This document shows positions 2,664 through 64,000 of a DNA stretch of 64,000 bases, piece by piece. This stretch comes from Octopus sinensis. Lineage: Eukaryota. A program made the translations under genes and the position numbers. The stretch lies in the NCBI RefSeq assembly GCF_006345805.1, contig NC_043003.1, positions 90,458,001 through 90,522,000 of the forward strand, read 5' to 3'. The notes under the pieces were generated by a model that made no database searches, was not told the origin of the DNA, and was given only the letters and a program-made list of their open reading frames with translations. Position 1 is the first letter of the stretch; each line of letters starts with the position of its first letter.

Positions 2664-3880
2664 TTGGGTCATCCCATAAATACTGTGTTTTTTTAAAATT
2701 TCTTTTATTTTTAAAAATTTAAAATAAACAAAGTTCTTTCTTAATCTAAAATATACTCACTTTCATTTTCTACAATGCTCTTCCATCTATCTGAAGACTT
2801 GCAAGGCCCCACTTCCAAAATTCCGTCTGTGATGAAAAATACTCCTTCAGTAACTCTTCTGGCCTCGTCTACAGAATTCATATTTTTTCCATCCAAATGA
2901 TTTTGAAGATTGTGGAATAAATGATAATCAGATGGGGTAATGTCCAGCGAATATGGTTGGTGGGACATAGTTTCCCATTCAAACTGCTCCAGCCTTTGGA
3001 ATGTCATCTCCTTGCTGTATGTGGCAGAGTATTATCCTGATGGAAAAACACTTTTCATCTTGAAACCAAAGATGGTTGTTTATCTTCTAGCGTTGACTTA
3101 AGCCACTCAGGCTGTTCGCAGTACATCTCTGCTATCATTTGGTTTGGGTTTAAAAGTTCAAAGTAGACAAAACCTTTCATATCCCACCAAACAGATAACA
3201 CCTTACATGGGTGAAGACCTTCTTTAGCTTGGGGTGCTGGTGTTTCTCCTTTCCCTACCCAGTCTTTGGTGCCTGACATTTTTAGAGAACCAACCCATCT
3301 CTTGTCACAAGTCACTATTCAGTCCAAAAAAGGTTCATTTGTGAGATGTGGTTGCAAAGAAGAGCACACATTCACTTTCGACACATGATTAGACCCGGAA
3401 AGTTTGAGGAACTCATTGACCCGATTTGCAAATTTTTCCAATGGCACGCAGGTGTAGATGAATGGTTGAATGACCAAATCTAAGCTTCTATGGTAGGTCT
3501 TCAAGTTATGATGGGATTTTGTTCCACCAGGGTTTGCAGGATGTCCTTGTCGAGCTGACAGTCTTCTAGGCTGTAATTTCTGGAACCACCATTGACACTG
3601 GCTTACACTTACTGTTCGATCTCCTGCACTTTCTGTTGCATTGTTGCCTTTATTGAACTCATAAAAATATGCCAAATATGCTCCTTTGTCACTTTCGTTA
3701 CAGCTTTGAAAAAATACCTTAAACTCAAACTGCACTCTTCAAAACTTGCACTAAGAATAAGTACAAAATAAAATTACTATCTGCTTTTATAGCAAGTTGA
3801 TGAAGGTAGTTTATCCTGTCCCCCTCTGACTTTTAGTTTATGCAATTGAAAAAAACTGCACTACTTATGGCGTGACTCAA
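2664..3880 (-). mobile_element. Mariner (Tc1/mariner) element, near full length, degenerate
   Basis: About 30-bp imperfect TIRs (TTGGGTCATCCCATAAATA / TTGAGTCACGCCATAAGTA) flanked by TA. Fragments FYEFNKGNNATE, TCDKRWV, VLSVWWDMKG and HQPYSLDITPSDYHLF. Confidence 0.92.
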
Positions 3881-4172: not shown

Positions 4173-4525
4173 TCTTTTACTTGTTTCAGTCATTTTGACT
4201 AGAGCACCTTTTTTAGTCAAAGAAATCAACCCCTGGACTTATTCTTTGTAAGCCTGGTACTTATTCTATTGGTCTCCTTTGCTGAACTGCTAAGTCATGA
4301 GGATGTAAACACACCAAGATTGGTTGTCAAGCGAAGGTGGATAGACAAACACAGACACACACACACATTTGACAGGCTTCTTTCAGTTTCCATCTACCAA
4401 ATCCACTCACAAGGCTTTGGTTGGCCCGAGGCTATAGTAGAAGACACTTGCCCAAGGTGCCATGCAGTGGAACTAACCCAGAACCATGTGGTTGGGAAGC
4501 AAGCTTCTTATCACACAACCACACC
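4173..4525 (-). mobile_element. tRNA-derived SINE family A copy
   Basis: Same head, body and tail as 25586-25986; tail ...GACTGAAACAAGTAAAAGA. Confidence 0.8.
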
Positions 4526-5005
4526 TTTGTGTTCCTTTGTTATTTATTTAAGGTCAAATTAGGTTAAAATATTTAATCCTGAAATATAAACTTTCAACAT
4601 ATTCTTTTATGATTAGTTGCTATGTTTCAAACATTTCTGTCAGCACTGTTGTGTTGTTGAAGACTGTGGCTTAAAATTTGCATATATCACATTTCTGGCA
4701 ATAATACACAATAATAATTTTCTTCCTAAGCTGCCTCCTTTTAGCTGGAGCTAGTTTTGTGATGTTAATTTATTTTTTGAAGAAAAACAAAAAAGAATTG
4801 TTGTTCTCTCAGAAAATGAGGTTAATATTACAAATGGGATGGTAAATGAACCAACAGTAATATTGTAATAAGTAAATAAAATAAATGTACAACATTTTCC
4901 AGTTTCATGATTCTAAATACAAAGAGATGTCAAGTTAAAATAATTAAATGTGTTTGCTGAGTAAAGACTGAAACAGTGTTTGGGAAATCTGCTAGTATTT
5001 ACTTT

Positions 5006-9731: not shown

Positions 9732-10145
9732 AATCCTTCCTATTATAGCACAAGACCTGACGTTTTAGGGGAAAGGGCAAGTTAATTACATTGACCCCAG
9801 CACTTGACTGAGGCCAAGTTGACCTCAATGGAATTTGAACTCAGAACATAAAAACAGATGAAAAGCTGCAAAGCATTTGGCCCATCATGTGAATGATTCT
9901 GCCAGTTCACTGCCTTAAATAATAATAATCCTTTCTACAATAGGCACAAGGCCTGAAATTTTGGTGTGAGGGGGACTAGTCAATTACATCAACCCCAATG
10001 GTCAACTGGTACTTAATTTACCAGCCCCAAAAGGATGAAAGGCAAAGTCGACCTCGGCGTAATTTGAACTCAGAACATAGCAATGGGCGAAGTACCACTA
10101 AGCATTTTGCCCAGCATGCAAATGATTCAGCCAGCTTGCCACCTT
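9732..10145 (-). mobile_element. Two tandem tRNA-derived SINE family B copies
   Basis: Head GGCGGTGAGCTGGCAGAATCGTTAGCA-like, body GCCTTTCATCCTTT.GGGGT.GATAAATTAAGTACCAG, (ATT)n tails. Confidence 0.8.
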
Positions 10146-10174
10146 AATAATAATAATATATATATATATATATA

Positions 10175-10436
10175 GATGCCAGCGCCGCCTGACTGGCGTC
10201 TGTGTCGGTGACACCTAAAAGCACCAACCGATCGTGGCTGTTTGCCAGCCTCCTCTGGCCCCTGTGCCGGTGGCACATAAAAAGCACCCACTACACTCAC
10301 AGAGTGGTTGGCGTTAGGAAGGGCATCCAGCTGTACAAACAATGCCAGATCAGACTGGAGCCTGGTGCAGCCTCCTGGCTTTTCAAACTCATGCTAGCAT
10401 GGAAAACGGACGTTAAACAATGATGATGATGATGAT
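10175..10436 (+). mobile_element. RTE LINE 3'UTR fragment with (GAT)n tail
   Basis: Highly similar to the 3'UTR of the 34141-34714 RTE copy. Confidence 0.8.
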
Positions 10437-11563: not shown

Positions 11564-12006
11564 ATCATCATCATCGTCGTTTAGCGTCCGTTTTCCACGC
11601 TAGCATGGGTTGGACGGTTCTACTGGGGTCTGTGAAGCCAGAAGGCTTCATCAGGCCCAGTCAAATCTGGCAGTGTTTCTATGGCTGGATGCCCTTCCTA
11701 ACGCCAACCACTCCGTGAGTTTAGTGGGTGCTTTTTACGTGCCACCCGCACAGGTGCCAGACAGAGCTGGCAAACGGCCACGAACAGATGGTGCTTTTTA
11801 TGTGCCACCGGCACAAGGGCCATGCGAGGCTGGCAACGGACACGAAACGGGGCGGTGCTGGCAACGGTCGCGAAACGGAAGGTTCTCTTACATGCCACCG
11901 GCACTGGTAACACATCTGCAATTTCCATTGATCGATTTCCATTCTGATCCCCACTTGCCTCAACGGGTCTTCACAAGTAGAGTTTCGACATGTCACCGGC
12001 ACTGGT
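11564..12006 (-). mobile_element. RTE LINE 3'UTR fragment, inverted relative to 10175-10436
   Basis: (CAT)n tail on the left, GGATGCCCTTCCTAACGCCAACC core and internal GGTGCTTTTTA(C/T)GTGCCACC repeats. Confidence 0.8.
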
Positions 12007-13644: not shown

Positions 13645-14043
13645 TCTTATCTTTTACCTGTTCCAGTCATTAGATTGTGGCTGTGCTGAGGCACCACCTT
13701 GAACTTTTAGTCAAATGAAATCAGCACCAGAACTTTTTTTTTCTCTTTTAAAGCCTGGTACTCATTCTATTGATCACTTTTGCTGAACTGCTAAGTTAAA
13801 GTGACATAAACTCACCAACACGAGTTGTCAAGTGATGGAAGTGGGGGTAACAAACACAGACACATATATAATATATATATATATATACACACACACACTA
13901 GGCTTCTTTCAGTTTCCATCCACTCACAAGGCTTTGCTCAGCCTGAACCTGTAGAAGACACTTGCACAAGGTGCCATGAAGTGGGACTGAACCCAGAACC
14001 ATATGGTGGACAAGCAAGCTTCTTACTACACAGCCACACCTAC
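13645..14043 (-). mobile_element. SINE family A copy
   Basis: Full head-to-tail similarity to 25586-25986. Confidence 0.8.
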
Positions 14044-14088
14044 GATTATAATGTTTTTGGACTACATTACCCTTTTCTGTTCAAATAG

Positions 14089-18931: not shown

Positions 18932-19339
18932 CAGTAGTACCTCGGTTTTCATCTATCTTTAAACCATGATCCTGAAGTGACTTGTATATATAAGGGAACT
19001 ATTACTGTGTATATATATATCAGAGAATGTATATAAGTCAAAACAATTTGTTGGCCTTTTATGGTTTTTTTAAATAATTGTTTATGTTATATAATATTAT
19101 GTCATATTATATTCATAGCATATCATGTAATATTGTAATATAAATAAATTATTGGATTGTCAATAATAACTCTCTATATAATTTATCTTCGTAATTGCAT
19201 TATACCCATATTTATATGGTATCCAACTGATGTACCAGTGAATTGGATGTTTCACACACCCCTTTCCTCAGTTTGTTACTATATATATAAAGCATGATTT
19301 ATTTGTGATCAGAGACATTCATAGACCAAGGTACTACTG
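18932..19339. mobile_element. pogo/Tigger-type MITE, with a duplicated right end to ~19430
   Basis: TIR CAGTAGTACCT(C/T)GGT at both ends and TA flanks (18930-31, 19340-41). Confidence 0.7.
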
Positions 19340-19761
19340 TATTAAATGGGTATGAGAAAGACAGGAGATAAAGCATGATTTATTCACGATCAGAGTTGTT
19401 AAAAAACCGTGATACTACTGCATTTGCATTTCTCCAATCCCTCGGAGGGAAGAAAAGCAATGGACCTTGGTAAGATTTGAAATCAGAGGAGTGAAGAGAA
19501 ATAAGAATTTAATATAGTATGGAATTTTGTTCACTACTATCAAACTACCTCAGTATATTGCTGGTACTTAGTTTTGTCACTTTTCGGATGGGTGACAAGT
19601 GAAGTGAACCCTGGTGGAATTTGACTTCAGATTATGGAAGGACAAGACTTAATAATGGGGAGTAATTAGACCATTCTTCCACACAAACACTGTAGGGATC
19701 AATATTGAAAAAGGAAAAAATTTAAAAGGTAGTTTCAAGAACTGATTAAGATTTGTTACTC

Positions 19762-19990
19762 CTACCCATCTAGTTTTTCTTGAAGACGCTTGAAAGTTTT
19801 AGAATATAATGGCACTGCTGTTGTATCTGCTTGATCACTTTCTCCATGTATCAGTTTGTAAGTCTCTGATGGTTTATACAAAATCCGACCCTCACCATCA
19901 TACTCAACACCAGATTTCTCTGCATCTACAGACACAGAGGAATCATTTGTCAAGCTAGATTTCCTTACATCACCATTCTCTTTAGAATCT
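19762..19990 (-). CDS. Zasp: Alternative Zasp exon D: 225-nt symmetric cassette (19766-19990, phase 2->2) or terminal exon ending at TAG 19762
   Basis: Acceptor GCTATGTTTTTTCAG|A. Encodes DSKENG...ILYKPSETYKLIHGESDQADTTAVPLYSKTFKRLQEKLDG, similar to the 'SEVYKML...QSGSFRxLQ' half of the ZM/DUF4749 module. Possible donor GG|GTAGGA keeps the frame. Confidence 0.8.
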
Positions 19991-20004
19991 CTGAAAAAAC
20001 ATAG

Positions 20005-20021
20005 CATGCACTATTCATGCA
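20005..20021 (-). promoter_or_regulatory. Two UGCAUG (Rbfox-type) splicing elements just upstream of the exon D acceptor
   Basis: Plus-strand catgca at 20005-20010 and 20016-20021, i.e. 15-31 nt upstream of the exon start, next to a (UUG)n tract. Confidence 0.6.
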
Positions 20022-22924
20022 AAAACAACAACAACAACAGCAATATTGAAACAATATCATGCTTAAAATAGATATAAGAAAACACACACACAAACACACA
20101 CACAACACATGACAAATAAGAAAATATAACATACAATAATAAGTTATTAAAAAAAATCAGCTAAAAGTAATGACATAGTAAATGCATGCGGAGAAAAATA
20201 AAGATAAAAAGTAAAAAAAAAGAATGCATATAATTATCTTTTGAGGTAAAATAACCAAATGATGATGATGATGAAACATTTGTCTAAATACAGCCACTTC
20301 CATTTGATGTAATATTCACAATTATCACCATCATTGTAGTATTAATGCCTAAATCATTGTTTCTAAATTCTCTTTGTCCTATGCCCCTCCATCAGTGGGG
20401 CATAGACCCCCACCTTCAGAAATACTAATCTAAACATAATCAGAAAAGGCACATGTTCAATAAGAAGGAAATAATCCATTGAGCTGGGAGGATGGAAAGT
20501 GAAGTCAATTCTATTAAGGTCTGAATCTAGACTATGAAAGTAAATATAGTAAGGCATTTGGTGCTTGTCGTCACAGGGTTAGGGTTAGGGTACTGAACCT
20601 ACCACTACCTATAACTAAAAACATAAAAACTTTTGGCTATTTCCATACATAACACCATTTTAAACCAATTTAATCTTGGTTCTTGAGTTGTGCATTATTA
20701 GATTTCACCAGATTGTATCAGGATTTCGCAAGAACAGAGACATTACCATCTTTGGTGGATGATGTGCAGCACTTATCTAACTCATCCCAGAATATACACC
20801 CCTGCTATAGTACTGCATCATTATACTATTACAATATTTGATAAAAGCTACTGTAGAAGTAATTAGGTAACCAAAGAGTTTTTATAAATGACATCAGTTT
20901 CAGAGAACAACTGTACTTTTTGGTAAATTAGTTCATATGAAAATGAATATTTTAGTAACAACTCTTAATGTTCACAGCAAAAGATCTAAAGAATGATAAA
21001 AATACATTGTACTTAATTAATAATGATAAACACAAGATTGATAAGGCGCATATTGTTACCATTTGTTAGATCTCTGATAGTGAGCATTTACAGTTCTTGG
21101 TAAAACAAAGTTCTTTTTTAACTGATTGGGCTCAGTTTTTATAGAACTGAGGAAGATTCAGCAAAAGATAGAATGATGCAAAATTTCATCATGATCACTG
21201 CAATGGTTCAATTCTGTGATATTGTTTATGAGAGACTACACTTTCCATCAATAGTTGAACTCTCTACCAGTTCAAAGATCTTAAGTTCATGTCCCAGTTT
21301 TTCTAAGCTGTCAGAAACATATACCAGGTTATGTAAAATCATTACTTGTGGTTAATCAGTGTCCTCTGTAAAAGGAGAGAGATTATTTCTCATCTCATTA
21401 ACATAAAACCTGATATAACTATCAGACCTTCTTTAGCTTATGACCTGGAGCAAACAGAATTATGTGTCTTGCACAAGAGAACACAATGACCCTAGGCATA
21501 GGTCTTGAATTCATAACCATGAAGTTTGTAGTTCAGTACTTTAATCTTACAATCTTTAAATGTAGACACAATTTATTACTAAAAAAATAAACTTAATTTA
21601 AACCCTGATTTAATTTATGTATTTTAGAGAGAAAACAAGGAGTTGTACCATTTCTAAGACATTAATGACAGGTGCAAGGAATCCCTACAAGCAGGAACTG
21701 AAGCCTAATTGTAGAACTTAATTGCATTTAATGATGGTAGCTAATAAGAAAGAACTTAGGAAAATTGTTCAAATGAAAATGGAAACATTAATATAGTGAA
21801 ATTCATTTGAAAATATTATTGGATCTCTAACATTACAGAAGACAATGAAAGACAGAAATTTTCAAATGAAATATGAACGCTAAAAGAGTTCTAAAAGATA
21901 AACATGAGTGCTGGGAACTATTTAAAATTACATGCTACTATTTCAAAGCTTAAGATACTAGTATAGGTTCTATAAATATAACTTATAATATTGGTAGTGG
22001 CTATAATTGATCAAAGCCTATAAGGGTTCTTGGGTGGTGGAGGTGATGGTGGTGGTTTAATCTAAGTGGAAAGGGAAGGATTTACAATTGTACTCAACCT
22101 ATGATCGAAAAGTTAAATATTTATGGAGGATTGACAACCCTACAATAATAAAAGCTGATTTCCACAACAAAATGACTTGTTATAAATATTAAATTTTGTT
22201 TCTTTTTAAATTCTTTTCTACTCTAGGCACAAGGGCCTGAAATTTTGGGGGAAGGGGTCAGTCAAAGTTAACCTTGGCGGAATTTGAACTTAGAATGTAA
22301 AGATAGACAAAATACCGCTAAGCATTTCATCTGCTGTGCTAACGTTCCTGCCAGCTTGCTGCCTTTGTTTCTTTTTAAATTGAGAAGAATTACAAAAGAA
22401 AAAAAAAATCTATCAAACAAAACTAACAGACTGTTACTCAATATAAGTTGAAAAAGGGGGTAAAAAAATATATTCTTAAATAATCTAAATGGTGCAATGT
22501 AAATCTTTAAGTTGTTTGGTTGTTTGCATCTATGGCATGGGAGAAAGTTGTCTTTCTTGTAGAGTACATCTATCCTTGTTCATCACCAATTCATTTAACA
22601 CTGATCCAGAATAGCATAGAACACTCAATTACGAACCATGCTACACACCACGAATTGATAACGTATGTTTGTGATGATATTTTTCAGGTATTTTTTAAAA
22701 TTATTTACTGATATGTTACAAACTTCAAAGTTATTAATATTTGTACAGTACAATACAAAATTAACAATGATTTCTACAGTACAAGTGAGAAATACCAATA
22801 ATAGTCTCTCTTTTAAAGTATCAAAATTTAAAATTTGTAAGGAAGATATTCAAAACACAGACTGAGAAATATTCTTTCACAGCTTAATTATGTGTGTGCA
22901 TAATTTCTGAGATTTGCCAACACT

Positions 22925-25585: not shown

Positions 25586-25986
25586 GGCTGTGTGGTAAGT
25601 AGCTTGCTTACGAACTACATGGTTCTGGGTTCAGTCCCACTGCGTGGCATCTTGGGCAAGTTTCGTCTACTATAGCCTCGGGTCAACCAAAGCCTTGTAA
25701 GTGGATTTGGTAGACGGAAACTGAAAGAAACCTGTCGTATATATGTATATGTATATATATGCATGTGTGTGTATATGTTTGTGTGTCTGTGTTTATCCCC
25801 ACCAACATTGCTTGACAACCGATGCTGGTGTGTTTACGTCCGTGTAACTTAGCAGTTCGGCAAAAGAGACTGATAGAATAAGTACTAGGCTTACAAAAAA
25901 GAAGTCCTGGGGTCGATGTGCTTGATTAAAGGCGGTGCTCCAGCATGGCCACAGTCAAATGACTGAAACAAGTAAAAGAGTAAAGA
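25586..25986 (+). mobile_element. tRNA-derived SINE family A, full length
   Basis: tRNA-like head GGCTGTGTGGTAAG...GGTTCAGTCCC, central TTGGGCAAG segment, internal (TA/TG)n and (AAAGAGT)-type tail. Other copies at ~1-77, 16380-16585, 49534-49772, 60699-61120, 63601-63830. Confidence 0.85.
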
Positions 25987-34140: not shown

Positions 34141-34714
34141 ATAGACCCAGGAAGACATGGGACAAGGTGGTCAAGCATGACCTTTGTACGTTGAGCCTCA
34201 CAGAGGCTATGACGAAAGACCGAGACATCTGGAGATATGCTGTGACTTCAAAGACCCAACAAATGAAGTGAGTTCATGGCTCGCAGGACGGCCTGCTGTG
34301 CTAACCTTGGATTGTAGAGTGACCCGCTGTTCTTGAGGAGACCTATTGAGTCAAGTACGTCAACATCAAAATAGAAATTAAATGGAAATTGTAGTTAAGA
34401 TATCGGTGACGCATAAAAAGCACCATCCAAATGTGGCAGATGCCAGTGCCGCCTGACTGGCGTCCGTGTCGGTAACACGTAAAAGCACCAACTAATCGTG
34501 GCTGTTTGCCAGCCTCCTCTGGCCCCTGTGCCAGTGGCATGTAAAAAACACCCACTACACTCACAGAGTGGTTGGTGTTAGGAAGGGCATCCAGCTGTAG
34601 AAACACTGTCAGATCAGACTGGAGCCTGGTGCAGCCTCCTGGCTTCCCAGACCCTGGTCGAACCGTTCAACCCATGCTAGCATGGAAAACGGACGTTAAA
34701 CGATGATGATGATG
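34141..34714 (+). mobile_element. 5'-truncated RTE LINE (ORF2 end plus 3'UTR)
   Basis: RPRKTWDKVVKHDLCTLSLTEAMTKDRDIWRYAV...* (34143-34271), then the GGATGCCCTTCC-type UTR and (GAT)n tail. This identifies the many UTR-only copies as RTE ends. Confidence 0.88.
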
Positions 34715-38014: not shown

Positions 38015-38150
38015 CTAAATGAGGTAAAAGAAGAAAAAATAGAAATTAAATACTGATTACTGTTTAAATCTTTTCGTTAGAAGAGATTTAAGTAATGAAT
38101 ATAAACAAATTGACATATTCACTTGGTACAAGAATATTGTGAACTTGTAT

Positions 38151-38597
38151 TCATCATCATCATCATTGTTTAATGTTCGTTTTCCATGCTAGCATGGGTT
38201 GGACGGTTCAACCGGGGTCTGGGAAGCCAGGAGGCTACACCAGGCTCCAGTCTGATCTGGCAGTGTTTCTACAGCTGGATGCCCTTCCTAACACCAACCA
38301 CTCTGTGAGTGTAGTGGGTGCTTTTTACATGTCACCGACACAGATGCCAGTCAGGTGGCGCTGGCATCAGCCACATTTGGATGGTGCTTTTTACGTGTCA
38401 CCAGCATGGGTATCTTAACTACAATTTCCATTTGATTTTGTAGTTAAGATACCCATGCCGGTGACACGTAAAAAGCACTGTCCAAACGTGGCTGATGCCA
38501 GCGCCACCTGATTGGCATCCGTGTCGGTGACACATAAAAAGTACCAACCGATTGTGGCCATTTGCCAGCCTCCTCTGGCCCCTGTGCCAGTGGCACA
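38151..38597. mobile_element. RTE 3'UTR copy with a fold-back duplication
   Basis: Minus-oriented copy 38151-38435, followed by an inverted copy of its 5' part. Confidence 0.85.
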
Positions 38598-47705: not shown

Positions 47706-50700
47706 TACGACTGTACTAATAGTTCTAGACTATTGGTAATTTGTGATTTGAAAAAGGAGAAAATCTAGACTGTAGGGTGCAAGCTTGACAATATAAACAA
47801 CTATGTAGTCACAGTAAAAGATTACAAGAGTTAGTAAAATGTGTAATGAAATATGTTGTCTGTGTTATTGAGGGAGATTAATGTCTTAAATTCTTCATTG
47901 CAAAAGTTATTTACCTGATGATTCTAAGTTATTTTTAAAATTTCATTCACCATCATCATTACCATCATTTACTGTGTTAATATGATTTCTAAGGCTGGAT
48001 GCTTTTCCTAAAGACTAATCACTTTACAGAGAGTACTGGGTGCTTTTTTCTTTCATGACACTGGCACAATATATGCAAAACAGGGTGTAGAAGAAAAACT
48101 TTGCAGAATTTTTTTTTTTTAGGCAAGTGGTAATGGTGGCTTCATCTACCTAATGTTTTACCATGTTTTTTCAGTTACCATCATGGTTTAGACTGGTACA
48201 CACCATGCATTTGCTGTTAAAATGTTTACCAAAAAAAAAAGGTAAATGGGAGGGAGTGTTTTTTGCTGCACCCTGTGTATATATAATATATACATGTATA
48301 TGATTATCTAAATTAGAAATTTAAATCTAAATGACTTGGAATTATTAGTTTGGTAAATGAGGTATTTAAGCATATGTAATAAACCTGACAGAAGGATAGA
48401 ATTGTAATTACGATACTGTATAAGTCTTTAAGTAAGATTAGGGCTCAAAGTAAACCAATGAAATATTTAGGAACCAACCCATTATTTCAGCACTCAAGAT
48501 ATGCAGATTTAATATCCCTAGTGTGAGATGTGTTGTATTCAACTGTGACTTTTAGTTGCAATGTCTTGTCATAATGTCAAAAGATATAAAATGTGAAGTC
48601 TAAATTGTGAAGATTTTAATAGGTATGTTGAAAAGAATATAGACACAATATTGAACAAAGGTAGATATAGACAGGTAGCTAGGTACATAGATAGGCAAAA
48701 AGATATGGAGGTGAGTAGAGAGATAGATTGATAGATAGGTGAGCTTTCTTGTTAGTTTCATGCTCCTGTGTTCTCCATCTGAATGACATTAGGGAAATCT
48801 GTTGAGAAGATATTTGGTTGCTATATTGAGCAAGTCAAGAAACTATGTAGCAAATTCCTTCTTGGTTCTCATTTTAATGAAAGCAGCTGTAGTCATTGTA
48901 TTATGAAAGTTAATATTGTTAAACATTAGCTCCCATTATGTATACTGTAACCATGTTGGCGTACTGGTGGAATTGTTAGCTGTAGCAGAACCCCACCAAT
49001 TTAAGCTACGCAAGCTAAAAATGATAGCAATGATATTTGATGCAGTAGATTATCAAGACTGTATTACAGAAAATACCTGTTCTCTTTGGAGTTTAATAAA
49101 CTACCTCTTCACACAGCAACCATTAACCTTTGTTAGAGTGCAAATATGACCTGCTCTACAAATACTTCACATATCTGAGATGGTGCACCCACACATACAC
49201 ATGCACATTCTGTACACAACATCCCCCTCTAAAATGTCTGCTGGGGACGGGGGCAGCTATACTAATACACTTTAATTATTGACCCCTGCTGTCTCTTCTG
49301 ATATAATAATCTTATCTCTCTGAATATGCTATGCTACTTCTTACCAAAATTCTCTTGAAGCATTCACCTCTCTTTTCCCTATCACTACTGCTATAATAAG
49401 ACTTACCAACATCCCCTCCCTTCTTTTTCTGGCACACCCCTCTTTCCTTATATTCTCCTCATAGCTAATCAAGAATGGCCAGTAACAGATGTACCATAAA
49501 AAAAGAATTCTCAGAGAAAGATGGACAATAGGTGCAGGAGTGGCTGTGTGGCAAGTAGCTTGCTTACCAGCCACAGGGTTCTGGGTTCAGTCCCACTGCG
49601 TGGCACCTTGGGCAAGTGTCTTCTACTATAGCCACGAGCCGACCAAAACCTTGTGAGTGGATTTGTTAGACGGAAACTGAAAGAAGCCTGTCGTATATAT
49701 GTATGTGTGTCTGTCCCGGTGCTCCAGCATGGCCACAGTCAAATGACTGAAACAAGTAAAAGAGTAAAAGAGTAATATTAGCCCTTTTAAAACCAATCTG
49801 CCTTAGATCACCACCGGTTCTATGATACTAACTTCCTGTTTTGAAGTAATCTAAATTAAAACACTTTCCATCAAAATTTAATGTTAATTTATATTCCAAG
49901 TATCAGTTCCATAGTGACAAAATTTTCATCATCATCATCATTTAATGTCAATTTCATACTGGCTTGGGTTGGGCTCCAATATATGTTTCGACATGGTTAC
50001 TATTGCTAGATACCTTTCCTAATGCCAACCACATTACAGACTGTACTGGGTACCTTTTTGTTTGCACCACCAATAACAATGTCATCATGTAGCTTGCAAA
50101 ACTAAGACTCTCATCTGGTGAGTGGGATGACAGTAGAATGGAAGGTGGTTTTGTAAGAGGTGCTGAGAAGCTAAAGTAAGAGAGAGGAATAGGTACAGGT
50201 ATCTTGCTGTAGAGATACATGGCCACCCTAACTTGAAATGGAGAAAGGTTGGTGGAAATGAGGTATCAGGGTGTACCCTCAATGTATAAGAATGTGGATA
50301 GGGAGAAAATACAAGCAAAGAATTCAGGTTGCATGGATAGGCAGATTCAGAAGGACATGGAAGAATGACAATAGAAGCCAGAAAAAATGGTCCGATTTCT
50401 AGTCAGCAAACTTGTGGTCTTGTCCTCCGTCATTTAATGTGCATTTGACACATTGGCATATGTTGTCCAGTTCAATAAAATCCAATGAACCAAACAACTG
50501 CATTGAACTCCACTGTCTACTTTAGCCTGATTTCTACAGCTGGATGTCCTTTTTAATGTCAACAACTTTACAGAATCTACTGAATGCTTTTTCATGACAC
50601 TACCACTAATAAGGTTATCAAGTAACGTGGAAGACAAAGAGAAAGACCCCTCAACTGAGTGAGGTTCTATTAGAGAGAGGTGGCTTCATGTCAGTGTTGA

Positions 50701-52730: not shown

Positions 52731-54820
52731 CACTGGATATATTTTATTAATAATGCTGGTCTACAAGGTTTTTGGTGTTTAGGAAATAGACATCAATTCT
52801 ATACAAAATTGGTCTCCTGAATCCAAATATAACCTATTTGACCTATCAGATCTAGTTTTTAAGTTATTGAACATCCCTGTAGTCACTATGTATGTGTGTA
52901 TGTCCAGTACGCAGTGTTTGTTACCTTATTCTAATTCTAATTATTTTTCTTTTTTCCATTCTTTTTAGATATTTATCTAAGCAATAGAAAATGAGCAAGA
53001 TGTCCTCTTCAAGACGTATTTTGTTTGTGGAGAATGCACTGATTTTGTTGAAAGAGCATATGTGGTATATGTTGGGGTCAAGATGGGAGACCAAGATAAA
53101 TATTGGGCACTGCATAGAGTCTGCAAACAATGTACGGAACATTTGCGACAATGGACTACAGGGACAAGGAAAAGTATGAGGTTTGTTATACCAATGGTAT
53201 GGTGGGAGCCCTACAATCACATGGATGACTGCTATCTTTGTAACCTAATTTTGAAAGGTATTAACTGGAAAAATCGACAAACACTTGTCTATCCTAATCT
53301 TGCCTCTGCTATTAGACCGGTTCCACTCAGTGAAGAGCTTCCTGTTCCTGTCTTCAATGTCTTGCCTTAGATAACTTTACCCCCAACCAAAGAAGATTCA
53401 TTACCTGAAGAAGACACTGGAGATCAAGACTTTTCAATTGACTTTACCTCAGCTATTCTCCCAGGTAGAGTTGAATGAACTAGTTCGTGAATTGAACCTC
53501 CCAAAAAATTCTCCAGAATTGTTGGCTTCTCAACTGAAAGAGAAGTATCTTCTGGAGAATGGTGTCTGTATAACATTGTATCAGAGTTGGCATGAAGAGT
53601 TCCTTTCTGTCTTCACAAAAGCAGAAGAGCTGGTTTACTGCAGAGATGTCAATGGGCTTCTTAATACACTTGGTGTTAAGGAATACAAACCAGAGGAATG
53701 GCGTCTTTTCATAGTCCGCTCTAAGTGTTGTTTAAAATGTGTATTGTTGCACAACGGAAATGTGTATAGCTTTGTCCCACTTGGCCACTCAACAACTCTG
53801 AAGGAAAGATATCAAGAAATTAAGTTGGGTTTAGAGAAGATATTCTATCATGACCATAAATGGGTCATCTGCATTGACTTAAAGATGGTGAATTTTCTCA
53901 TGGGACAGCAATCTGGTTATACCAAATACCCATGCTTTCTTTGCATGTGGAACAGTAGAGACCAAGGAAACCACTATGTTAAGAAAGACTGGCTGCCTCG
54001 AACAAATATGGCTCCATGTAGAGCTGCCCATATATTGAGTGAGATAAAATCATTTCCACCCCTTTGCACATCAAACTCGGATTGATCAAGCAATTCATCA
54101 AAGCTCTTGACAAAAATGGGGAGTGCTTCAAGTATATTTGCAGTGTATTTCCAGACTTGATGACTGAAAAACTTAAAGCACGGATTTTTGATGGACCACA
54201 GATCCGTAAGCTCTTGAAGGAGACAAATTTCGTGAAAGTAATGAGCGAAAATGAAGCATCAGATTGGCTAGCCTTTGCAGAAGTAGTGCAAAATTTCCTT
54301 GGGAAACACAAAAGTGAAAACTATAAAGACCTTGTTACCAACTTGATATCAACTTGATATTAACGTGAATATGAGCCTCAATTTTTTAGTCATCTTGATT
54401 GTTTTCCTGAAAATCTTGGGGATGTTAGTGATGAACAAGGTGAACAATTCCATCATGACATCAAGGAGTTGGAAACTCAGTACCAAGGACGTTGGGATGC
54501 TGTGATGATGGCAAACTATTGCTGGTGTTTTAAACAAGATACTCCTGTTGTTCAACATTCATGGTGCACAAAGAATTTTCTGCTAAAAATCTTAACCAAT
54601 GTGCATTTTCAATTTTGAATTTTTATTTGTACTTCATTTTGTTTTGTGTTACGCTCTCTTTATTGATTCATACTATATACCTTTTGTATGAATAAAATAC
54701 TTACTGTATCGGGTTTAGTCAGAAACTAGACCTGATAGAGAAAAACTGAAATAAAATCACTTAAGAATTTGTTGAAATATTCAAGGCACCAGACAAAAAT
54801 AATTGTTTTGTTGCCCACTG
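52731..54820 (+). mobile_element. Chapaev3-like (CMC group) DNA transposon, degenerate transposase ~52980-54545
   Basis: Fragments KMGDQDKYWALHRVCKQC, PMVWWEPYNHMDDCYLC, IDLKMVNFLMGQQSGYTKYPCFLC, PPLHIKLGLIKQF, IFDGPQIR and SDEQGEQFHHDI..LETQYQGRW. Subterminal IR at 52843-52858 / 54723-54738; right end TTGTTGCCCACTG|TAA. Left end uncertain; family assignment is from recall. Confidence 0.7.
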
Positions 54821-59100: not shown

Positions 59101-62100
59101 GATCAGGTGAAACTTGTCTGAATGGACCAATTATCATCAATTTTCCATGCTTGCCTGAGTTAGAAGGAATTTGTGAGGCAGATTTTCTATGGCTGGATAT
59201 ACTTCCTGCTGCCAACTTTCTCTTGTTTACCAAGCAACGTAATATTTCCTCAAGGCCAGAGATGCTTTCATGGAAGACTGAAAACAAACAACACTACTTG
59301 TATGGTGGTGACACAACTGTCTCAAGATGTCAAGACAAGGGCACCCCCCCACACACGTGCATGTGCACATGCACACACGTGCATGCACGCATACACATGT
59401 GCATGCACACACACATGTGCATGTGCACACACACACGTGCATGTGCACACACACACAATAGGCATTTCAGTTTGTCTACAACTCTATACACAAGGCTTTC
59501 ATAGAAGCCACTTACTCAAGATGCTATGCACTGGGACTGAACCTGAAACAGCATAGCTAGAAAGATAAACCAATGTTAATTGGACATAAATGACATAAGC
59601 CATTACATTGTTGTTTAGCCCAAGGTTAGCCAAAATCAATCATATCATGAATTAAAAGCATTCCAGATATGACTATTCCATTTTTTCTAAAGGCAGTGTA
59701 TCTTAGATTGTATTATTTCATGTGTCCTTACTTTATACAAGATAGAAGGATGTTATTTGAGGAAGATGTGGCTGCTATTTCTGTCCGGTCAAATGATCAC
59801 ATAGAGAATTTCTTGTTGGCTTATGTAATTATTTCTTGCAAACAAAAGTTAAAAATAAATAGAATTTACCACTTAGTCAGGAGGGAAGGCACTAAGGAAT
59901 CAGGTGGTGATGTTAAACTGGCAAATTTAGTCTATCACTCAAGTAGACTGTAGCAGGATTTGAACTCAAAATGCAAAGAGCCAGAGCAAATACTACAATG
60001 CATCCAGACCAATGTTCTTATATTTCAGCCGATCAGAACTTATAGTTCTGTCACAAATTGGTATTTTTTTCATCAACCACACCCAGAAAAAGAAATAAGA
60101 TATTGGTCTTGGCAGGATTTTTGCCAATTCACTGATTTTATTTCATTCTTTGTAAGTAATAAATGATATCATTTAATAGGTTAATTAACACTTCTGATTT
60201 CAAATGTAGGAGTAATTCTTGAATTAATTTCTGTGATACCAATCTGGCTGAGGCAATCTCTGGTTCTATGAAACAAACTTCCTGTTTTAAAGAGATTTAA
60301 ATCAAAACCTTCCATCAAAATTTCATGTTAATTTATTTTCCAAATACCATCTTAATAATGACAAAGTCACTTAGATGCTTCGTTATATTCAAAATTAATT
60401 GAAACAAAGGCAGTGTATTTAATTAGAAACATGATTATAAAAAGGTTAATGTAAAAGAAATAGATACAAGTGCTAACTGTAGTAAGTTAGCAATTTCAGT
60501 TCAGGGAAAGTTTTCTTCTATTCAACACAACATTTATTTCTCTGAACATATTTATAAAGAAGAAAAGAAAGAAAAAAGGTGCACTACTAAGGATATAGGG
60601 GTATCAGTGAGCAGAAACTTGACTTGAGATGTACCAATGTCAAATATAATTTCATTACCTAAGTTCTTTCATGAATATTTAAACATTATTTAAATATAGG
60701 CACAGGCATGGCTGTGAGGTAAGAAGCATGCCTATCAACCATATGGTTCCGGGCTCAGTCCCACAGCGTGGCACCCTGGACAAAAGTCTTCTACTGTAGC
60801 CTCGGGCCAACCAAAGCCTTGTGAGTGGATTTAGTAGATGGAAACTGGAAGAAACCCGTCGTGTGTGTGTGTGTGTGTGTGTGTGTCTTTCTGTCTTTGT
60901 TTGTGCCCCTCACCACTGCTTGACAACTGGTGTTGGTGTGTTTGCATCTCCATAACTTATTGGATCAGCAAAAGAGACCGATAGAATAAGTACCAAGCTG
61001 GACCCCAGTACCAACAGTACTGGAGTACTGGGGTCAATTCATTCGATTAAAAAAAACAATTCAAAGTGGTGCCCTGGCATGGCCGCAGTCTAATGACTGA
61101 AACAAGATAAAAGATAAAGATAGCGGGTGCTAATCCATATAAATATCTAGCCCTTTTGTAACCATATTTCTTTTGAAATGCACTGTCTTTGTTACAATTA
61201 ATTTTGAAAAGACTGACTAATTTAGGAGAAATAATTTTATCATAATAAAGCTGGTGTGTGGAATATGAAATGGAATTCTAGTTGTAAGTTTTAATGTAGA
61301 TCACTTTAAATGGAATTTGTATCATAGGACCAAGGGTAGTTTCAGGCAGGTTGATATCAAAAGAGTCAGAGGTGCTTGCTGGATAAAAAAGGTATAAAAA
61401 AATATGAATAAACAACTGTGCAAACTTAGCTTCTGTTTGAATGAAATAATCTGTTCTCCCCACCCCACTAAAAAAAACAAAAAAACCCACAGAGCAAGGG
61501 CATCTATAAAATGTCACATAGTAAATAGGGGACACTGAACAACAAGCTGTTAAAAACCATTGGTATAAATATTTGATGTGAATTGAAAAAAAAAAAAGCT
61601 GAACAACTGCTGAATACAAGAGTTGAAAGAGGTGTGCAATCGTCCACACTGAATGCATCACAAATAAAAGCGATAGGGTTCGAATCGAACAGACCAGCGT
61701 GAATGTGACGCTAAATTAAGGAAGAACAAGACATATGAAGAGTGAAGTGGTTGTAGGTGCTAACTATATGAAAATTTGAAAAGTAGTAGTTAGAAAAAGA
61801 CACATAGACAAAATGATGTTTAGACAAAGGGCAATTTATATAAATTCTAACATCACCACTATTAGTGTGGGTATCAAAAAGAGGGTGTCTTTCAAAAGGT
61901 CCAACTGTAGTTGTGGTGATGTTGAACGAGTACATAATCCAGTTTCAATTCTTGGTGACAGTAAATTCAATCTTGCTATTGTGGGTTCAAATCTTGCTGT
62001 AATCACCTTTGCTTTTCATCTATCTGGATTTGCTAAATCAAGAGGGAGAACTGGCAGAATTGTTAGCACATTGGACAAAACGCTTGGAAGCATTTCTTCC

Positions 62101-64000
62101 AGGTCTTTACATTCAAAACTTTGTTGAGGTCAACTTTGTCTTTCATCCTTTCAGTATCAATAACATAAAGTACCAGTCAAATACTGGGTTGTTGGTAGTG
62201 ATTAACCCACTCCTTTCAAAATTATTGGCCTTATGTCTAAATTAGAAACTATCATTAAGAGGTAAAACTGGCTGAGTTATTAGTGCATTGGAACAATGCT
62301 CAATGGCATTTCTTTCACCTCTTTACATTTTGAGTACAAATTCCATGGAGGTCAATTTTGCCTTTCAACATTTCAGGGTTGATAAAATAAAATGCCAGTC
62401 AAGTACTAGGGTTGATATAATTGACTAACTCCTGTCCTTAAAAAACAGTGGAAGGATGGACACAGTCATATTTAGCTTTTTTGTTATCATATTTCTGTTG
62501 AAATACACTGCCTTTGTTTCAATTAATTTCGAAAATAATGAGGAATTTAATAAAATAACTCTCAATGTTAAAGGGCTCATGTTTGAAACACAAACTTATA
62601 CAAAGTTTTGATGAAAGGTTTTAATTCAGATCACTTTAAAACAGAAAGCTTCTATCATAGTTCCAGGGGCAGTTTCAGGTGATTTGATATATAAAGGGTT
62701 AGTAAAACTGCAATGGTTTAGAAACCATTGTAAGTTATCCAAAACCATAGTGAAGGATACAAATTTAATTTGACATCTCAATAAAAAAGAGAAAGGGGCA
62801 CAGGTATTTCACTGGGATTATTAGTCAGTTTGAGAATCCTTAAGTAATGTGGTTGTAAGATTAATTATAAGATGAAGCTAAAGTAATTAAATAAAAAAAA
62901 AAACCCAAAAAACTCGACAGTGTCAGTGACTGTTTCCTACATTTTAACTATTTCATTCTTTTTGACTTCCCTGCTCTATTTTATCATGTCCTCCTGTCCC
63001 TCAAAGTAAAAACAAACCAGGCTTACATCTTGTTTATAAGCTAAATTACACTGAAAAGAATTAGTACTCAGGGATGCCAGAAGCTTAAAAAATAACTAGT
63101 TCAGTGGATGCACATGTACATAATATAGATATATATGCATTTTTAATTTATTGAAATTACATTCATAGTGAGAAGAACCACTCATTACCTAAATGAAAAC
63201 AAAGGGAGACAACAAAGAATTTATATAAAAGTTAATTAAAAATAGAATGTAGTGTGCTTGTATGTGAGTAGGAGGTGGGTAGCAGGTGGTCTTTGAACTT
63301 ATCACTAATTACTAAGAAAGAGCTGACAGATGGCCCCATTGTAATTTAGTTTCAGTTGATTTTTATTCAGTAAAAATTTATGTTTTGGTTCACTTAGTAT
63401 ATTATGTATGTTAGTGACCACTTCTACATATTCTCTTTGTATCAATTGATCTCCTCTCATGATTGCACAAACACACATTTGAAGTGGTGTCGACTTTCTA
63501 AGCTGAGTAGAGCAAAACTCTCTTAATGACTAAAAGATTAGAAGAAAAAAAGAATTCAGGTGACATGAAAAATGTTCAAGCAATGATATCTTTTATTTTT
63601 AATTTGTTTCAGTCATTAGACTGTGGCCATGCTGGGGCGAAGTTATGGGTATGTGAACACACCAGCACTGAGTGGTGATTGGGGGACAAACACAAACACA
63701 CATATATACGAGGAGCTTCTTTCAGTTTCCATCTACCAAATCTACTTTCAAGGCTATGGTTAGCCTGAGGTTATAGTAAAGGTCACCTGCCCAAGGTGCC
63801 ATGCAAGTTTCTTACCACACTGCCATGCCTATTATGAACAAAATTTTCACCTTTATATAGTAGTTTGATGCATTTACAAGTACCACCACCACCACCACTA
63901 CTACTACAATGTAAATATCACTGTATTGACTTGACTCTAAGATGTTACACACTGCTGGTCACAATGTGCCTCTCCACATTTTTAAATGATGCCACCCCAC

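Follow-up and report, generated by a model that had tools for sequence, protein, structure and literature searches.

Here we describe a 64,000-nucleotide stretch of the Octopus sinensis genome (NCBI RefSeq assembly GCF_006345805.1, contig NC_043003.1, positions 90,458,001 to 90,522,000), which we refer to throughout as the window. Its minus strand carries exons of a gene that is, judged by its sequence, a mollusc orthologue of the Zasp/LDB3/Enigma family. Our subject is one exon of this gene, here called the focal exon, together with a pair of UGCAUG hexamers that precedes it—we consider it probable that this is an ancient, frame-preserving cassette exon of mollusc Zasp/LDB3, most likely switched by an Rbfox-family protein through the upstream UGCAUG pair. 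The exon map was built from tblastn searches with homologues and from manual reading of the splice sites; all coordinates are collected in Table 1.

The identity of the gene follows from its domains. When the exons are joined, the protein matches the Pfam LIM family (PF00412) in three stretches (E 5.5e-36), and the Pfam family DUF4749 (PF15936) is found across the ZM exon and the focal exon with 52.4 bits, against a cut-off of 28.7; a first-pass annotation of this DNA, made from the letters alone, had proposed a Zasp/LDB3-type gene, and these domains bear it out. A tblastn search with PDZ-containing homologues found no PDZ-coding exon within the 64-kb window. The full-length transcript nearest to the gene (P0057, from the Logan RNA contig L017) carries a PDZ domain, and the 5' part of the gene, with its PDZ exons, probably lies beyond position 64000. 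The nearest relatives of the exons are Logan contigs and transcripts, which are cephalopod-like by protein similarity.

The focal segment is a real coding exon of this Zasp/LDB3-family gene. It has a single open frame, which starts at its second base and encodes the peptide DSKENG…QEKLD(G). On the minus strand the acceptor reads tgctatgttttttcag/AGATTC (slashes mark splice boundaries), with 19990 as the first exon base, and the 3' end of the exon runs into the intron as …CTAGATGG/gtaggagt, which places the donor boundary at 19766/19765. The same donor, GTAGGA, is present in the contig of a sister species (L001) and in a distant cephalopod-like contig (L006). Splicing from 19766 to 16704 is in frame (…KLDG/APVASYTPPP…), and a transcript of the bivalve Tegillarca has the same junction to the proline-rich part (…KLDEG/APPPAP…). 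The length of the exon is 3 x 75 nucleotides (nt), so skipping it also preserves the frame. The phase-2 acceptor, the 225 nt of open frame, and the donor GATGG/GTAGGA that had been read in the first pass are all correct on the minus strand, and the frame into exon E is kept as had been claimed, with the bivalve transcript in agreement.

Homology gives the exon its meaning. With the focal exon in place the DUF4749 match covers profile positions 4-83 of 93 (46 bits), and without it only positions 4-37 of 93 (32.4 bits); the focal exon itself covers positions of about 38-83. The peptide of the focal exon alone has no match in Pfam—the domain is detected only after joining to the ZM exon—and the earlier idea of a cassette that completes the ZM module is thereby upheld. 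Against the bivalve protein P0005 the exon gives a tblastn E value of 2e-8, and a homologous segment sits between the ZM motif and the proline-rich/LIM part in Tegillarca (P0216, and P0005 from the spliced RNA contig L005). Segments in the same place occur in the gastropod Batillaria (P0056), in the nemerteans Tubulanus (P0058) and Lineus (P0059), in the brachiopod Lingula (P0218, P0060), and in a vertebrate-type PDLIM protein (P0177; …SPVFQAVVK…SRSFNILAQMTG). Two motifs are conserved within the 75-residue segment, [KR]PSET[YF]KL[IV] and S[KR][ST]F[KR]xLQxKL.

The first protein search with the exon returned one genomic open reading frame (ORF) only, and a profile search of 1.84 billion representatives, dominated by the LIM columns of P0005 (393 columns kept), yielded the full-length homologues. 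In the protein collections searched, no annotated protein from this or a close species carries the focal exon, and none of the searches gave an annotated cephalopod protein. A scan of the window with Rfam found zero RNA families. In a genomic contig of a sister species (L001-L004) the focal exon is 93.3% identical with zero indels, and the flanking introns reach 84-90% identity with indels; the 50 nt directly upstream of the exon are 95.7% identical, against the 84-90% seen elsewhere in these introns.

The gene holds a related motif elsewhere. The SFK1 exon precedes the ZM exon in the gene and is 67% identical to its match in Littorina P0048; its motif, of the type S-x-S-F-K-x-L-Q, was also seen in Littorina, Mytilus, Batillaria, and the cephalopod-like P0057. 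Since SFK1 carries a second copy of the motif, skipping of the focal exon leaves this motif class in the protein.

Several lines of evidence suggest that the focal exon behaves as a cassette. Among the eight orthologues in which both exon ends could be fixed, the exon measures 225, 216, 186, 195, 183, 255, 240, and 177 nt; every one of these lengths is a multiple of three, and intron phase is 2/2 in 8/8. Both forms are found among relatives. The predicted LDB3/PDLIM5 isoforms X1-X3 of Lingula anatina (XP_013392481-3) have the segment in X1 and X2 and lack it in X3, and the one difference between X2 and X3 is the homologous stretch of 53 amino acids, with 0 mismatches elsewhere. In the full-length cephalopod-like transcript P0057 the proline-rich region follows immediately on the ZM exon. 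Skipping is further found in Littorina X2 and in Mytilus edulis X22, X24, and X33 (three members of the Mytilus cluster were read), and inclusion in proteins of Tegillarca, Batillaria, and Tubulanus; by identifier, the skipping forms are P0057, P0048, and P0055, and the including forms P0005, P0216, P0056, and P0058. From this comparison, alternative use of the focal exon in O. sinensis itself is likely. The donor, which is below consensus, is a supporting sign of a regulated exon, and so is the raised identity to the sister contig in the 50 nt before the acceptor.

The cephalopod-like relative shows further variety in this gene. Its Logan RNA contigs (L017-L023) contain at least three isoform classes: full length (PDZ, SFK1, ZM, proline-rich, LIM), a class that skips SFK1 and ZM (the sibling isoform P0200 drops these two exons as well as the focal exon), and one with an alternative first exon. 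The last begins MEYLYKNA… and occurs in six RNA samples; no counterpart to it was found in the window.

We now turn to the intron upstream of the exon. The two UGCAUG that had been reported 15-31 nt before the acceptor were located at 20021-20016 and 20010-20005, and the further GCAUG and (UUG)n correspond to two more GCATG and a (YTG)6 run. In the whole 64 kb, the sense strand has no second place with four GCATG within 200 nt. For two TGCATG no more than 30 nt apart, the expectation over both strands is 0.56 pairs per window; outside a low-complexity tract near 59.4 kb only two pairs are observed, one of them at the focal exon. That tract (59358-59443) is a CA/TG run with many overlapping TGCATG on both strands, which inflates motif counts taken over the whole window. 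None of the other eight mapped exons has a TGCATG nearer than 127 nt, and around the ZM exon both 300-nt flanks are free of it.

The position of the motif is shared far more widely than the surrounding sequence. Orthologous exons were recovered as genomic ORFs with a profile of exon homologues, and two marine-metagenome contigs (L024, L025) were found by a DNA pattern made from a four-sequence alignment; the lineages comprise a distant cephalopod-like one (L006-L010, with 47% amino acid identity to the focal exon), three of bivalve type (L011, L012, L013), and two of gastropod type (L014, L016), besides the metagenome contigs and the window. In 9/9 lineages, the window included, the acceptor is preceded by a TGCATG at a distance of 6-41 nt (details in Table 1). 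Conservation of the motif in the orthologous intron, which the first pass had proposed to look for in other coleoids, is therefore positive far beyond coleoids. Between the introns of the distant lineages and that of the window nothing but the motif was seen in common (judged by eye, with no alignment).

When hexamers were counted without bias in the seven lineages that had been recovered first, the result pointed the same way: TGCATG is the sole hexamer present in all of the 50-nt flanks (7/7), and the splice-site hexamer TTTCAG is present in 5/7 of the same flanks. By chance alone, a 50-nt stretch would hold one or more TGCATG with a probability of about 0.05. The first 250 nt after the exon contain no TGCATG in any of the eight lineages measured. 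From this recurrence we conclude that UGCAUG at this 3' splice site is under long-term selection. We rejected the conservation of the motifs in L001 as informative by itself, for overall the flanks match at about 90%, and under neutrality all four motifs would survive with an expectation of about 0.1.

Two further observations concern the motif's neighbourhood. In the 41-kb gastropod-type contig L016, five TGCATG (2619-2957) crowd into the last 370 nt of the intron of about 1.1 kb that leads from the ZM exon to the orthologous exon. In 4/7 lineages (window, L006, L012, L014) the 150 nt before the exon contain GU-rich or (UG)n runs, and in L006 a GUGUGUG follows immediately after the proximal UGCAUG. 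Such tracts are not universal; they may recruit a partner of CELF/Bruno or RBM24/SUP-12 type, and the GU-rich tract at 20080-20109 of the window could be bound by a factor of CELF/Bruno, RBM24/SUP-12, or TDP-43 type.

UGCAUG is the target of the Rbfox RNA recognition motif, and by the position rule for these proteins, binding upstream of an exon generally represses it. The mechanism that we propose is built on this background. An Rbfox-family protein on the UGCAUG pair, which precedes the 3' splice site by 14-31 nt, most likely sets the choice; when bound, it would cover the region needed for recognition of the branch point and polypyrimidine tract by SF1/U2AF and U2, and the expected result is repression of the exon, with skipping in Rbfox-high cells. 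We infer both the binding factor and the direction—repression is expected because of the position rule and the steric logic just given. Inclusion would add 75 residues, with the two motifs that form the second half of DUF4749, right after the ZM motif; skipping would join the ZM exon to the proline-rich exon in frame, and the LIM domains would be retained in both products. A homologue of RBFOX has been reported in the transcriptome of Octopus vulgaris (PMC5736919), and in Drosophila muscle Rbfox1, together with Bruno1, regulates the splicing of Zasp52 (PMC8742874).

Other explanations must be considered. The first-pass annotation had described a three-way switch—skip, include, or terminate—and of this, skipping and inclusion are supported, with both forms present in relatives and the frame kept; termination is not, nor is the suggested split between arm or mantle muscle and neurons. 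On the three-way account the donor would sometimes be ignored, translation would stop at GGG TAG (19766-19762; the TAG is at 19764-19762, and the stop is present as had been noted), and intronic polyadenylation would yield a LIM-less short Zasp from a composite internal/terminal exon, which we regard as quite unlikely. An in-frame stop does stand right after the donor in the window, in L001, and in L006; however, any phase-2 intron starting GTAA, GTAG, or GTGA always gives a read-through stop (T-R-R after the donor G), and the stop is uninformative for a terminal fate because every phase-2 GTAR donor brings one with it. Read past its donor, the neighbouring ZM exon likewise gives GGG TAA, and the ZM exon of the gastropod-type contig L016 (about 1903) behaves alike; the gastropod orthologue in L014, with a GTGGGG donor, has no immediate stop and reads on for 16 codons. 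As a designed feature, the read-through stop was rejected on these grounds. The sub-consensus donor GTAGGA would also suit termination, as would the AATAAA/ATTAAA hexamers that follow the focal exon at distances of 253, 382, and 463 nt, but such hexamers occur at background density (about 2.2 per kb), none is positionally conserved in L001, and two of the three fall inside a stretch of about 590 nt that is absent from the sister contig. Short forms are known in the family: in vertebrate LDB3/Cypher they end a little beyond the homologous SRSFRILAQ segment, and among the isoforms of fly Zasp52 some lack LIM domains. Against this, no protein, ORF, or transcript in any collection searched ends here with upstream exons attached, and the LIM-less terminal exon is not sustained.

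Constitutive inclusion is also unlikely. In that case UGCAUG would tune splicing efficiency, serve another RNA-binding protein, or be a relic; the acceptor has a good U-tract, and inclusion isoforms are annotated in several lophotrochozoans. Skipping isoforms in Lingula, Littorina, Mytilus, and the cephalopod-like transcript argue otherwise, as do the symmetric phase of all eight orthologues with both ends fixed and the deep conservation of an intronic regulatory hexamer, which is typical of regulated exons. It is very improbable indeed that the UGCAUG pair is a functionless chance by-product of TG/TTG microsatellites: the motifs do adjoin (YTG)6 and (TG)n tracts that differ in length between the window and L001, yet 9/9 lineages have the motif at the same place, several with no microsatellite there, and across the entire window chance predicts only 0.56 pairs of TGCATG. 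This by-product reading is effectively refuted by the conservation across lineages, provided that the contigs are orthologous.

Several points weigh against an Rbfox-switched cassette. The exon could be constitutive in this species, as the evidence for a cassette comes from relatives, and upstream Rbfox sites are not always repressive. Relative to the sister contig, 11 codons of the exon have changed, 9 by non-synonymous and 2 by synonymous substitutions, the former all outside the two conserved motifs; because of this ratio, the N-terminal two-thirds of the exon is, as far as the sequence tells, weakly constrained as protein, a loosely constrained linker. For the Logan, ENA, and metagenome contigs, the taxon was assigned by protein similarity and not by name. 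Finally, four of the ORF-derived loci start at an ATG that lies inside (U)GCAUG, an ascertainment bias that favours the recovery of loci with an upstream ATG; the five loci free of it (L013, L014, L016, L024, L025) all have the motif, and in three of the four biased loci (L001, L006, L011) there is a further copy apart from the one that supplies the start codon.

If the Rbfox-switched cassette is real, it would matter for several reasons. The choice of Zasp/LDB3 isoform sets Z-disc assembly and myofibril size in the fly and underlies human myopathies, and Rbfox is a core splicing regulator of muscle and neuron. Intronic regulatory elements can seldom be traced between invertebrate classes because the introns are unalignable; a single hexamer that holds its place at a splice site through cephalopod-, bivalve-, and gastropod-type lineages would be a precise and testable handle on how lophotrochozoan muscle varies a Z-disc scaffold, and a clean case for dating the link between Rbfox and Zasp. 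For annotation, the focal exon and both its inclusion and skipping isoforms are to be expected in cephalopod gene models. A bolder idea, which we hold only tentatively and rather doubt, is that the UGCAUG pair and the exon for the DUF4749 C-terminus form an ancestral bilaterian Rbfox-Zasp circuit that the mollusc classes have retained for more than 500 million years and that may also persist at the vertebrate LDB3/PDLIM5/PDLIM7 exon; if true, few position-conserved intronic splicing switches of the muscle Z-disc would be older.

The window has some other features. In the intron downstream of the focal exon, a minus-strand stretch of about 590 nt (18950-19540) is missing from L001, with homology resuming at about 18950; it carries two direct repeats of about 26 nt (CTGATC..AATAAATCATGCTTTAT) and is probably, by this comparison, a lineage-specific insertion. 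A broken mariner/Mos1-type transposase spreads over three frames at 2744-3738 on the minus strand (Pfam HTH_48, Transposase_1). Dispersed repeats resembling short interspersed nuclear elements or other transposable elements form two families, recognized as recurring pseudo-peptides in the six-frame ORF list, and several of them lie in Zasp introns. Opposite the Zasp strand, at 52981-54354 (plus), are open frames of 129, 236, and 104 amino acids with no match in Pfam, which may be a transposon-derived gene.

Table 1. Features of the window, and distances of TGCATG from the orthologous exon in each lineage (from the 3' end of the motif to the exon).
Feature	Position	Strand	Remarks
Focal exon	19990-19766	minus	225 nt; intron phase 2 on both sides
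Focal exon peptide, DSKENG…YKPSETYKLIHGESDQADTTAVPLYSKTFKRLQEKLD(G)	19766..19990	minus	C-terminal half of DUF4749/ZM module
3' splice site, tgttttttcag	19991..20001	minus	short pyrimidine tract, then AG
5' splice site, GATGG/GTAGGAGT	19758..19765	minus	off consensus at +4 and +6
UGCAUG no. 1 (distal)	20016..20021	minus	3' end 25 nt from exon; kept in L001
UGCAUG no. 2 (proximal)	20005..20010	minus	3' end 14 nt from exon; inside expected branch-point/polypyrimidine region
GCAUG	20058..20062	minus	67 nt upstream of exon; kept in L001
GCAUG (cGCAUGCa)	20185..20189	minus	194 nt upstream of exon; kept in L001
(YUG)6 run	20026..20043	minus	directly 5' of UGCAUG no. 1; 6 nt shorter in L001
(UG)n/GU-rich microsatellite	20080..20109	minus	length differs from L001
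SFK1 exon (…QQSRSFKLLQGLMDSGQ)	31602-31500	minus	phase 0 to 1; paralogous motif copy upstream of ZM exon
ZM exon, EPPPALRP…NWQYNSPIGLYSKENV…SSNNG	24867-24654	minus	phase 1 to 2; donor AATGG/GTAATG
Exon E, proline-rich: APVASYTPPPAAPAPPPPQVQLF	16704-16634	minus	phase 2 to 1; splice partner for inclusion and skipping
Exon F, proline-rich and start of LIM1	15968-15719	minus	phase 1 to 2
LIM1 exon	14930-14744	minus	phase 2 to 0
LIM2 exon	13564-13444	minus	phase 0 to 1
LIM3 exons	13101-12986 and 8189-8113	minus	phase 1 to 0, then 0; last ends in stop
Repeat family 1 (examples)	4203-4559 (+), 13810-14085 (+), 25618-25833 (-), 49514-49738 (-), 60682-60909 (-)	as marked	
Repeat family 2	10130-10393 (-), 11604-12005 (+), 34346-34666 (-), 38143-38415 (+)	as marked	
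TGCATG, window			14, 25 nt
TGCATG, L006			20, 32 nt
TGCATG, L011			10, 32 nt
TGCATG, L012			10 nt; plus GCATG at 41
TGCATG, L013			6, 10, 36 nt
TGCATG, L014			22, 26 nt; two overlapping copies
TGCATG, L016			30 nt; four more within 370 nt
TGCATG, L024			about 17, about 41 nt
TGCATG, L025			14, 18 nt; two overlapping copies

The proposed arrangement has counterparts in known systems. In C. elegans, FOX-1/ASD-1 with SUP-12 acts at egl-15 exon 5B, where an upstream UGCAUG leads to repression of the exon, and at exon 4 of human CALCA, Fox-1/2 blocks SF1/U2AF with the same outcome. The likeness is that UGCAUG precedes the 3' splice site by some tens of nucleotides; in the worm the motif also adjoins a GU-rich element bound by a muscle protein of RBM24 type. 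These are other genes, however, and the octopus mechanism is read from position alone.

Within the gene family, vertebrate LDB3/Cypher/ZASP and PDLIM5/7 have the same order of PDZ, ZM/DUF4749, and three LIM domains. The motifs of the focal exon align with SPV[YF]QAV[IV]K … SRSF[RN]ILAQMTG of the vertebrate-type P0177, and the homologous exon of vertebrate LDB3/PDLIM5/PDLIM7 is the one encoding …SRSFRILAQMTG. Short vertebrate LDB3 isoforms without LIM domains arise through a separate alternative terminal exon, unlike read-through of the donor discussed here. In Lingula anatina, a brachiopod, the orthologous 53-amino-acid exon is present or absent among the predicted isoforms X1-X3, with the rest identical.

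The system that shares the gene family as well as the proposed factor is Drosophila Zasp52, regulated by Rbfox1 and Bruno1/CELF in fibrillar versus tubular muscle (PMC8742874). The fly events, at alternative 3' splice sites of exons 14/15, need not be orthologous to the octopus exon, and the octopus case is one of sequence only; in both, the Z-disc scaffold of one gene family is diversified by alternative exons, and intronic Rbfox motifs have GU-rich (CELF-type) tracts close by. This kind of regulation is itself already known—what appears to be new, from the sequences compared here, is that UGCAUG is fixed at this one splice site across mollusc classes.

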